Assembly (NCBI GenBank): GCA_038087875.1
Contig: CM075981.1
Coordinates: 2,418,001-2,482,000, forward strand
Reading direction: 5' to 3'
Source: Malacoraja senta
Lineage: Eukaryota
DNA: 64,000 nt
The notes under the pieces are model-generated. The model saw only the letters and a program-made list of their open reading frames with translations, was not told the origin of the DNA and did no database searches. Numbering within the stretch: the first letter of the stretch is position 1; each line of letters starts with the position of its first letter. Of this stretch, positions 45,182 through 46,149 are shown one piece after another. The translations under genes and the position numbers were made by a program.

Positions 45182-45721
45182 TCAGTTGGAGCTTTCATTG
45201 ATTGTCAGCCAGGCCCATACTTCACATGCCTTATTATCATGAGTGGACCAGACACAGGAATATACCCCTTCATCTTTCTCTTGTACGCCTGCCAGGATCA
45301 ACGAGGCATCCATGTGAACATGGACATCTGGATGCTCGAACCTCCATTGGGTACCAGATCGCTTAGATTGGTCAGACGTTCTAATACCATACCTGGCAAT
45401 GATAACACCGTCTTTTCTCCAAATAACATTCGAGAGGTGATGATAATCTCTGGATACTTTACAAGGCAGCGTAATAATGCTACCCGCAGATGCAAAGAGC
45501 ATATTCTCGCTAGTCGATGCACGGTGATCACCGTCAGAACCTGGCTCGTCCGTGCATCTTGGAAGCTGTTCATCGTTGACTTGCCGAGGCGCCCGTGCGT
45601 TCCACCCGGGCAAGTTTGCTTCCTCTCCCCATTCTCTGGAGATCGGACCTGTTCCAGTTCCGGAGACTTGCCACACCATCTCCACAAGGACCATGAATCC
45701 TATCCATCTCTGCAGTCCCAT
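45182..45721 (-). CDS. Predicted secreted single Ig V-type domain protein, paralog A (179 aa)
   Basis: ATG at 45721, 4 nt after acceptor tttcacccacag|; the ORF-track start at 45748 is a GTG in the intron. Hydrophobic N-terminus; ITLPC...VIW...DASLIL...DEGVYSC with Cys spacing of 69; stop with no donor or TM segment. Confidence 0.85.
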   Translation of the reverse strand: MGLQRWIGFMVLVEMVWQVSGTGTGPISREWGEEANLPGWNARAPRQVNDEQLPRCTDEPGSDGDHRASTSENMLFASAGSIITLPCKVSRDYHHLSNVIWRKDGVIIARYGIRTSDQSKRSGTQWRFEHPDVHVHMDASLILAGVQEKDEGVYSCVWSTHDNKACEVWAWLTINESSN

Positions 45722-46149
45722 GTTCCTGTGGGTGAAACAATGGGTCACCTTATTGCAACTCAGTAGGATTCATGATGACATTCCCTGAACCCGCCCAGAG
45801 TTGGGGAATCGAGAATCAGAGGACATCGGTTTAAGGTGAGGGGGGGAAAGATTTAATGGGAAACTGAGGGGTGACTTTCTTACACAAAGGGTGGAGGGTG
45901 TTTGGAACGAGCTGCCGGAAGAGTTAGATGAGGCAGGTACTATCACAATGATTAAGAAACAGTTAGACAGGTACATTGATAGGACAGGATTAGAGGGGTA
46001 AGGGCCAAAAGCTTGAAAGCGCGCACCACCAGACTCAGGAACAGCTTCTTCCCCTCTGCTATCAGGCTTCTGAACTGGGGGAACAGTGAACAGAGACAAT
46101 CCCACCCCCATCACTCACAGACACTTGAAGGATCCACAGGGGTGGTTAC

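Follow-up and report, generated by a model that had tools for sequence, protein, structure and literature searches.

Tandem skate genes in which a 5′ cassette homogenized by gene conversion is probably joined to a positively selected immunoglobulin V domain

Two tandem genes, A (45182-46224) and B (52111-53293), were identified on the minus strand of a 64,000-nucleotide stretch of the skate Malacoraja senta (NCBI GenBank assembly GCA_038087875.1, contig CM075981.1, positions 2,418,001 to 2,482,000). This stretch is referred to as the window and all positions follow its numbering. The interpretation that we favour, with fairly high confidence, is that they are tandem batoid genes with a 5′ cassette homogenized by gene conversion and an immunoglobulin (Ig) V domain under positive diversifying selection. 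The sequence evidence for the conversion half is firm and comes from several species; that for the selection half is good but model-dependent. The genes lie in 188-codon open reading frames (ORFs; 45182-45748 and 52111-52677, both on the minus strand) and their products are of 179 residues each, counted from the in-frame ATG at 45721 and 52650. A tblastn search of the window gave no further copies beyond A and B. The coordinates of the features are collected in Table 1.

Genes A and B were compared in a global alignment (46447-44530 versus 53516-51486) scanned with sliding windows. Identity was 93-100% on both sides, 100% at about 45810-45572 and 62-85% at about 45560-45210, and it was back at 94% or more no further than ~30 nt from the stop codon. 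The counts made by eye in the preliminary description proved accurate: 45551-45808 and 52480-52737 differ at exactly one of 258 nt, and 56 of the first 57 residues from the MGLQRW start are identical. The V core, for which about 55% identity had been claimed, matches at 46/86 aligned residues (53%), with three in-frame indels of 2, 1 and 3 codons (18 gap columns) and no frameshift. The promoter and 3′ flanks, described as more than 90% identical, show a flank divergence of 56/1252 (4.5%), with 2.6% in exon 1 and upstream, 4.1% in intron 1 and 5.4-6.4% in the 3′ flank. Within the V-coding part (45185-45559) 96/366 positions are substituted (26%). The longest identical run measures 237 nt (45572-45808 = 52501-52737); when the flank difference density was permuted 20,000 times, 70 permutations contained a run at least this long. 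The label 'leader block' used earlier for 45551-45808 holds for the signal peptide (~21 codons) that it contains, but the block begins with 83 nt from the end of intron 1 and 4 nt of 5′ untranslated region (5′UTR), and past the signal peptide it takes in 27-28 constant codons of the mature or pro-protein and several codons of the linker.

A single-sequence search followed by a profile search yielded only eight relatives among 5.8 billion proteins: six from Leucoraja erinacea, all labelled 'uncharacterized', which carry consecutive LOC numbers and map to a single chromosome, one from Rhinoraja longicauda, and one from the electric ray Narcine bancroftii that is called 'nectin-1-like'. When 1.84 billion cluster representatives were scanned in full with HMMER, only generic Ig proteins were added. 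On these sequences the family appears to be batoid-restricted and non-rearranging. The databases name it only 'uncharacterized protein' or 'nectin-1-like', and no published account of it was found in the literature searched, which is not proof that none exists. The multi-Ig proteins P0008, P0011 and P0012 were considered as giant proteins carrying the block as an internal repeat; this was rejected, since their Ig repeats are of generic or bacterial type and unrelated to the block.

The comparison covered 14 copies in three skate genomes: W_A and W_B (genes A and B), Le1-Le8 (Leucoraja) and Rh1-Rh4 (Rhinoraja). They were located by scanning fetched loci with the 144-nt leader; Rh4 is cut off by the locus end. 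The Leucoraja genes are spread over at least 90 kb. Two copies resemble pseudogenes, though both retain the homogenized leader block: Le1 (L003:2003) lacks the ATG and is interrupted by an early stop, and Rh1 (L005:1312) has lost the first canonical cysteine and reads past the normal stop into unrelated sequence (191 residues).

The constant 5′ cassette is ~1 kb long and comprises promoter, exon 1, intron 1, signal peptide and constant block. In five pairs taken across V groups, its limits lay at about -890 and +130/+145 relative to the ATG, and its 3′ breakpoint always fell between +117 and +145, within codons 43-50. Identity of the leader block is 90-100% among all 14 copies, against 52-91% for the V region. 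The proximal intron is 98-99% identical within Leucoraja and 95-96% identical between the window genes and Leucoraja. For the pair Le5/Le6, synonymous divergence (dS) in V is about 1.0-1.3 and 41% of clean four-fold sites differ, while divergence (K) over the 600 nt upstream is 0.008 and the 3′ flanks are unalignable. Upstream of about -70 relative to the ATG, five copies (Le3, Le4, Rh1, Rh2 and Rh4) carry a different sequence; intron 1 occurs in at least two structural classes, which do not follow the V groups.

Trees of the two modules disagree. In the 5′ module tree the six Leucoraja copies form one star-like clade (support 99/98), whereas in the V tree Leucoraja monophyly is rejected (approximately unbiased test, p=0.001) and W_B joins Le6/Le7 (97/97). 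W_A has a long branch in the 5′ module tree; this artefact, which comes from aligning across a 137-nt intron indel, was excluded from interpretation. Between -63 and +150, the states at sites -63, +62, +82 and +143 are species-specific and fixed whatever the V group; +62 corresponds to G21A in all Leucoraja copies, and +82 and +143 to S28A and V48G in all Rhinoraja copies. The variants at +112 and +118 are common only to the physically adjacent Le5-Le8, which span three V groups. Only -47 and +54 divide along the V groups, and the variants there are private to the recent Rhinoraja duplicates Rh1/Rh2. Thus variants are shared by species or neighbour and not by V lineage which, together with the incongruent trees and the Le5/Le6 contrast, bears out the earlier proposal that gene conversion homogenizes the leader. 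The converted segment is closer between paralogs within a species than between orthologs, and the V tree is incongruent with it, as in concerted evolution. The run 45572-45808 is probably a recent conversion tract that arose after speciation: the A/B split precedes that between the window species and Leucoraja, yet A and B are identical in the block, where W_B differs by 3-5% from its Leucoraja orthologs.

In the V domain, differences at first, second and third codon positions number 42/34/28 for A/B and 17/10/7 for Le6/Le7. Pairwise estimates were obtained by maximum likelihood (ML) with the GY94 model. The ratio ω of nonsynonymous divergence (dN) to dS was 1.69 for A/B (dN 0.40, dS 0.23), 3.2 for Le6/Le7 (dN 0.11, dS 0.035; p=0.04 against ω=1) and 2.3 for Le2/Le3 (dN 0.18, dS 0.078; p=0.04). 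Over the close pairs ω ranged from 1.2 to 3.2, falling to 0.5 in the ancient pair Le5/Le6. For seven sequences of the α, β and γ groups, the one-ratio model M0 gave ω=1.41 (p=0.016 versus ω=1), and model M2a was preferred over M1a with 2ΔlnL=68.2 (p=1.6e-15). The site classes of M2a were 21% at ω=0.14, 43% at ω=1 and 36% at ω=4.8. Posterior probability for the selected class exceeded 0.95 at 26 sites. Selected sites are enriched in the BC, C′C″D, DE and FG loops (15/37, versus 10/67 in strands; Fisher p=0.007), and the posterior averages 0.94 over the FG (CDR3-like) loop. Diversifying selection on V, as first proposed from the A/B comparison, is therefore upheld by ω above 1 in close pairs, by the model comparison and by the loop enrichment. 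The preliminary description had set against this proposal a dN/dS of at most 1 with a dS in V as high as dN; the ratio lies above 1, but dS in V is 3-4 times the flank value, an excess for which selection by itself does not fully account.

V could be more diverged than its surroundings by age and not by rate: ancient V lineages would persist by birth and death while their flanks are rejuvenated by conversion, with concerted evolution alone and no positive selection. In keeping with this, the 5′ cassette is homogenized across V groups at a dS of about 1, dS in V exceeds K in the flank, and V groups are trans-specific, δ occurring in Leucoraja and Rhinoraja and α in all three species. The comparison with the 3′ flank speaks against it. 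A tree of 650 nt of 3′ flank has the same topology as that of V, (W_A,(W_B,(Le6,Le7))), with support of 91/89 in the flank and 94/92 in V. The branches are 3-16 times longer in V than in the flank: 0.13 versus 0.026 for W_B, 0.14 versus 0.038 for the Leucoraja stem, 0.033 versus 0.006 for Le6, 0.066 versus 0.0064 for Le7 and 0.24 versus 0.015 for W_A. Since the topologies are congruent and every V branch is longer, even after the recent Le6/Le7 split, the contrast in this subfamily reflects rate and not age. With dN above dS in all close pairs, M2a strongly preferred and clean four-fold sites at only ~2 times the flank value, concerted evolution without selection is considered unlikely.

Several points weigh against the combination of conversion and selection. 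The A/B pair alone is only borderline for ω above 1 (p=0.08). The M1a/M2a code was home-written and is not PAML, and was run with naive empirical Bayes posteriors, F3x4 codon frequencies and 7 taxa; the site models assume no recombination within V, so that undetected conversion would inflate M2a. The ML dS in V is 2-6 times K of the 3′ flank in three independent pairs, which selection alone does not predict. Even between species, divergence of the 5′ cassette is 2-3 times lower than that of the 3′ flank; because conversion cannot cause low divergence between species, constraint or a lower mutation rate is also implied there. The genes are known here from genomic sequence alone (the matching read runs are genomic only), and secretion, propeptide cleavage and ligand binding are predictions from that sequence.

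The synonymous excess in V may be due to repeated hits in selected codons, to micro-conversion from unsampled paralogs or to a local mutational process. The last two form an alternative in which germline hypermutation or micro-conversion, specific to the V region, raises dN and dS together and selection only keeps the fold. Besides the raised dS, 27 of the 70 changed A/B codons carry 2-3 differences, the window genome perhaps holds 8-12 copies of the block, so that most potential donors are unsampled, and analogous claims have been made for conotoxins, whose mature-peptide exon has Dn and Ds 2-8 times higher (PMC3862624). However, the divergent zone starts inside the exon and ends within ~30 nt of the stop and so tracks the mature coding region, and the changes fall preferentially at codon positions 1 and 2 and in loops. 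A sliding-window nearest-neighbour analysis of ten sampled V regions found no high-identity donor patches, which also speaks against the earlier suggestion that V segments are imported from other paralogs. Four-fold sites in codons with the first two bases unchanged are near the flank level (8/120 versus ~4 expected, three independent pairs). This alternative is likewise judged improbable. The 'neutral' reference flanks are transposon-derived, since they are made of very high-copy repeats: the 3′ flank of gene A (44700-45187) and 45798-46102, the latter a repeat fragment within intron 1, reach summed word depths of 1e5-1e6 in the runs of three organisms.

The uniformity of the block could instead be due entirely to purifying selection on promoter, splice, signal-peptide and propeptide functions. 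The low divergence of the cassette between species is compatible with this, as are the signal-peptide codons 1-20, with only 3 variant codon states in 13 copies. The other 19 of the 22 variant states fall in codons 21-48, however, and the 22 comprise 17 non-synonymous and 5 synonymous states (crude N/S ratio 1.05, or 0.80 without changes private to Le8). The intron is as uniform as the coding sequence within Leucoraja, replacement changes exist but are common to all paralogs of a species or to neighbours, and copies cluster by species in the 5′ tree, contrary to the V tree. Purifying selection without any conversion is thus very unlikely. Only the signal peptide looks clearly constrained at the protein level and, since the N/S ratio of ~0.8-1.05 indicates weak constraint on the protein, uniformity of the block within a genome is attributed mainly to homogenization.

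An assembly or polishing artefact, in which the block would result from collapse or consensus homogenization of a repeat, is extremely unlikely: although the block is present in multiple copies and interrupts Logan contigs, the window has two separate copies with different V regions, a short-read contig (X1) spans 45157-45621 with 0 differences and joins the unique V of gene A to the shared block without a mismatch, and the constant cassette with a variable V recurs in the independent assemblies of Leucoraja erinacea and Rhinoraja longicauda. The X1 run is of independent format; its word depth is ~30 over V versus 240-380 over the block (about 8-12-fold), which suggests roughly ten block copies, perhaps 8-12, in the genome of the window species. 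From the X1 contig and these depths the observation is taken as real, and the suspected collapse of the identical block is set aside. Runs of two other organisms contain the block but not the V sequence of gene A.

The gene models rest on an annotated Leucoraja erinacea homolog with a TATA box, a ~90-nt exon 1 ending CT/GTGAGT, a ~540-nt intron and the acceptor cacccacag/GAAC immediately 5′ of the MGLQRW ATG; equivalent signals are present in the window genes, and the promoter sequence of gene A is also found upstream of Leucoraja genes. For exon 1 of gene A, the 3′ end is exact (donor CT/GTGAGT) and the 5′ end is approximate, the start site being placed ~30 nt past the TATA box. NCBI models of the Leucoraja paralogs begin at an ATG (MAGDENK...) merely 9 nt past the TATA box (Leucoraja L001:10001-10090; window counterparts 46196-46207 and 53265-53276). 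This ATG probably lies upstream of the transcription start, for which reason MGLQRW is taken as the likely true N-terminus and the 31-residue N-terminal extension as likely spurious. Constant and variable parts lie in a single coding exon with no intron between them. A split-leader intron inside the constant block, as in typical Ig V genes, was rejected: no good donor/acceptor pair was found, the linker indels are all in frame among 11 intact copies and the NCBI models read through.

Table 1. Features of genes A and B and of their duplication units in the window
Feature	Positions	Strand	Remark
Gene A promoter: CCAAT box, inverted CCAAT (ATTGG), TATA box TATAAAAG at 46224-46217	46217-46300	-	Motif positions
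Gene A exon 1, probable 5′UTR	46119-46195	-	Homologous to exon 1 of NCBI Leucoraja models
Gene A intron 1, 393 nt, acceptor cacccacag/GAAC	45726-46118	-	
Longest A/B identical run, 237 nt	45572-45808	-	End of intron 1, 5′UTR, signal peptide, constant block
Gene A start codon and signal peptide MGLQRWIGFMVLVEMVWQVSG	45659-45721	-	Translation; almost unchanged across 14 copies; cleavage site predicted from sequence
Gene A constant block of mature or pro-protein TGTGPISREWGEEANLPGWNARAPRQV	45578-45658	-	Predicted disordered
Gene A hypervariable part: Cys-containing linker and IgV domain	45185-45577	-	Pfam, AlphaFold, codon models
Gene A stop codon TGA	45182-45184	-	Aligns with stop of gene B and Le6/Le7
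Gene A 3′UTR/flank, repeat-derived, to AATAAA at 44878-44873	44873-45181	-	94% identical to B
Gene B coding sequence, 179 codons and stop	52111-52650	-	Signal peptide and constant block as in A; V domain differs
Gene B intron 1	52655-53190	-	~137 nt (52934-53071) without counterpart in gene A (46013)
Gene B exon 1 and TATA box (53293-53286)	53191-53293	-	Exon 1 3′ end = 53191
Gene B AATAAA	51809-51804	-	
Duplication unit A	40710-46447	.	Self-BLAST; insertions at about 41625-43701 and 44143-44530
Duplication unit B	50148-53516	.	Self-BLAST

The products are predicted to be small secreted proteins, given the signal peptide and because a membrane anchor is absent. The order is signal peptide, a constant segment of 27-28 residues, a short variable linker with one cysteine, a single IgV domain with its own G strand, and stop. 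An RxPR motif in the constant block (NARAPR/Q), kept in all family copies but one, may be a convertase site. The Pfam V-set profile (PF07686) was matched at 30.3 and 31.0 bits (cut-off 26) and ig at 30.9/29.7 bits (cut-off 21.8); Ig_3 was also above threshold. C87, W101, D150, Y154 and C156 are invariant in 12 sequences and correspond to the canonical B-F disulfide pair, the C-strand tryptophan and the D-x-G/A-x-Y-x-C motif. An extra invariant cysteine pair, C56 in the linker and C166 at the start of strand G, is present in all intact copies. AlphaFold predicts residues 70-176 as an IgV sandwich (pLDDT 83-92) with strands A′, B, C, C′, D, E, F and G, the C″ region (116-122) being of low confidence and residues 1-69 disordered. 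The ORF stops 4-14 residues past the G strand at a conserved stop, and no further Ig exons or homologous ORFs were found in the window.

The best fold matches of this model are all IgV domains, namely nectin-1 D1, JAML, CAR D1, nectin-2, CD226, PVR and TIGIT-family domains (Foldseek E 5e-9 to 1e-7, TM-score by target 0.6-0.75, 19-26% identity). Nectin-1 D1 is the top match, with JAML, CAR and CD226 scoring about equally, and a profile-versus-PDB search returned a matching set of nectin/CAR-like V domains (E≈1e-12). As judged from the predicted model, the nectin/CAR likeness is a resemblance of fold type. These nectin-type proteins are multi-domain type I membrane proteins and mostly single-copy, whereas the skate proteins are single-domain, predicted to be secreted and tandemly expanded, with an extra invariant cysteine pair and a constant N-terminal extension. 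Membership of the nectin/PVR family was rejected on its V-C-C, transmembrane and cytoplasmic-tail architecture. A rearranging Ig/T-cell receptor V gene was also rejected, by sequence reading and structure without a systematic scan for recombination signal sequences, as the G strand lies within the V exon and is followed by a stop, and the leader is unsplit from V.

Toxin families are similar in their mode of evolution. Conotoxins have an 'unexpectedly highly conserved' signal peptide and an extremely diverse mature peptide in which the selected sites lie, with Dn and Ds raised in the mature-peptide exon (PMC3862624); snake-venom genes have conserved signal peptides and introns and an accelerated mature region (PMC2711939). 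Like these and the frog antimicrobial-peptide families, the skate genes are tandem, encode small proteins (secreted, by prediction) with a near-invariant signal region and have dN above dS and raised dS in the mature part. Conservation is higher in introns and UTRs than in the mature coding sequence, and selected sites fall in exposed loops. The conotoxin pattern recurs in the contrast of a 92-100% identical signal/pro region with a 52-91% identical V and in the mature ω above 1. In contrast to the toxin families, the variable module of the skate genes is a full vertebrate Ig V domain and not a short disulfide-rich peptide or an enzyme, the boundary between constant and variable parts lies inside one exon and not between exons as in conotoxins, homogenization by conversion is shown through species- and neighbour-specific shared variants, and the skate genes have no known association with venom or a gland.

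Amphioxus VCBPs, teleost NITRs, skate MDIRs and snail FREPs are, like the skate genes, non-rearranging V-type multigene clusters with hypervariable regions, and VCBPs are secreted. No sequence relationship was found between the skate family and VCBPs, NITRs, MDIRs or FREPs; unlike these innate Ig-superfamily members, it has one V domain only and no chitin-binding, fibrinogen, transmembrane or ITIM/ITAM part. On Leucoraja erinacea CM054030.1 (31.89-31.98 Mb, loci L001-L004), the V genes are interleaved with GH18/CBM_14 chitinase genes, one full length with CBM_14 and two short fragments with the catalytic motif DGLDIDWEYP. This loosely recalls the V-plus-chitin-binding theme of VCBPs. The linkage may be coincidental; no GH18 catalytic exon was found in the 64-kb window or in the Narcine locus. 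At major histocompatibility complex (MHC), KIR and Ly49-type loci, conversion and recombination erase neutral divergence around a diverse segment and segment trees are incongruent. Those are mainly allelic or balancing-selection membrane receptors, whereas the skate pattern is between tandem paralogs with a congruent 3′ flank. UrIg and UrIg2 are likewise non-rearranging V-containing genes of cartilaginous fish, UrIg2 being dimeric with V-C1-C2-C3 architecture (PMC12227049). A relationship to them was rejected on domain architecture, as the skate family is without C domains and its V is nectin-like.

The window is otherwise repeat-rich vertebrate DNA. A 199-codon ORF antisense to gene A (45167-45766, plus strand) extends across the whole coding exon; it is probably due to chance, because its gene B counterpart has only 82 codons. 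Arrays of a ~66-nt tandem repeat lie at 9813-10205, 26435-26892 and 31105-31318 (91-98% identical within and between arrays), with relatives in a Leucoraja locus (L002:7240-8200). ORFs of the long interspersed element type at 57188-60673 (plus strand) encode a GDSL esterase domain, an AP endonuclease and a reverse transcriptase, and a DDE_3 (Tc1/mariner-type) transposase fragment is at 20201-20752 (minus strand). Four runs of N amount to 1279 bases in all (1503-1689, 31917-32286, 34324-34523 and 38634-39155).

In the favoured explanation, the 5′ cassette is repeatedly homogenized among paralogs by gene conversion or unequal exchange, the latest exchange tract in the window having left 45572-45808 identical in A and B. 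Past the cassette boundary, on the statistical evidence, V is driven apart by diversifying selection concentrated in its loops while the Ig framework and the two disulfide pairs stay fixed. Conversion tracts entering V would be either removed by selection or blocked by sequence divergence, so that the boundary may be self-reinforcing. The loops would form a putative ligand-binding surface engaged in an arms race, possibly with a pathogen or virus ligand, an immune-receptor ligand or a reproductive partner, and the constant N-terminal segment would be a putative propeptide or docking tail. The pathogen-recognition role suggested earlier is plausible from these sequences; the data fit a role in reproductive or other conflict equally well.

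Within one exon, a segment kept uniform by conversion abuts one that evolves several times faster than neutral DNA, and the congruent flanks of this natural experiment permit rate to be separated from age. The mode of a constant prepro region and a hypervariable mature region would be extended from venoms and antimicrobial peptides to a vertebrate Ig V domain, and the synonymous excess in V offers a test case for a targeted mutational mechanism in such families. A more speculative and doubtful reading is a germline repertoire of soluble nectin-like single-V recognition proteins, built from a constant cassette and an exchangeable hypervariable V, diversified by selection and also by a targeted mutational or micro-conversion mechanism, and acting as decoys or opsonins against nectin/CAR-using viruses or microbes; a targeted mechanism of this kind would explain the V synonymous rate of 2-6 times that of the flanks. 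Cartilaginous fish are the oldest lineage with antibody-based immunity, and an additional diversified V-domain system in them would bear on V-domain recognition outside RAG rearrangement. If the repertoire reading were true, it would represent a non-RAG humoral V-domain layer of defence in the oldest jawed vertebrates.

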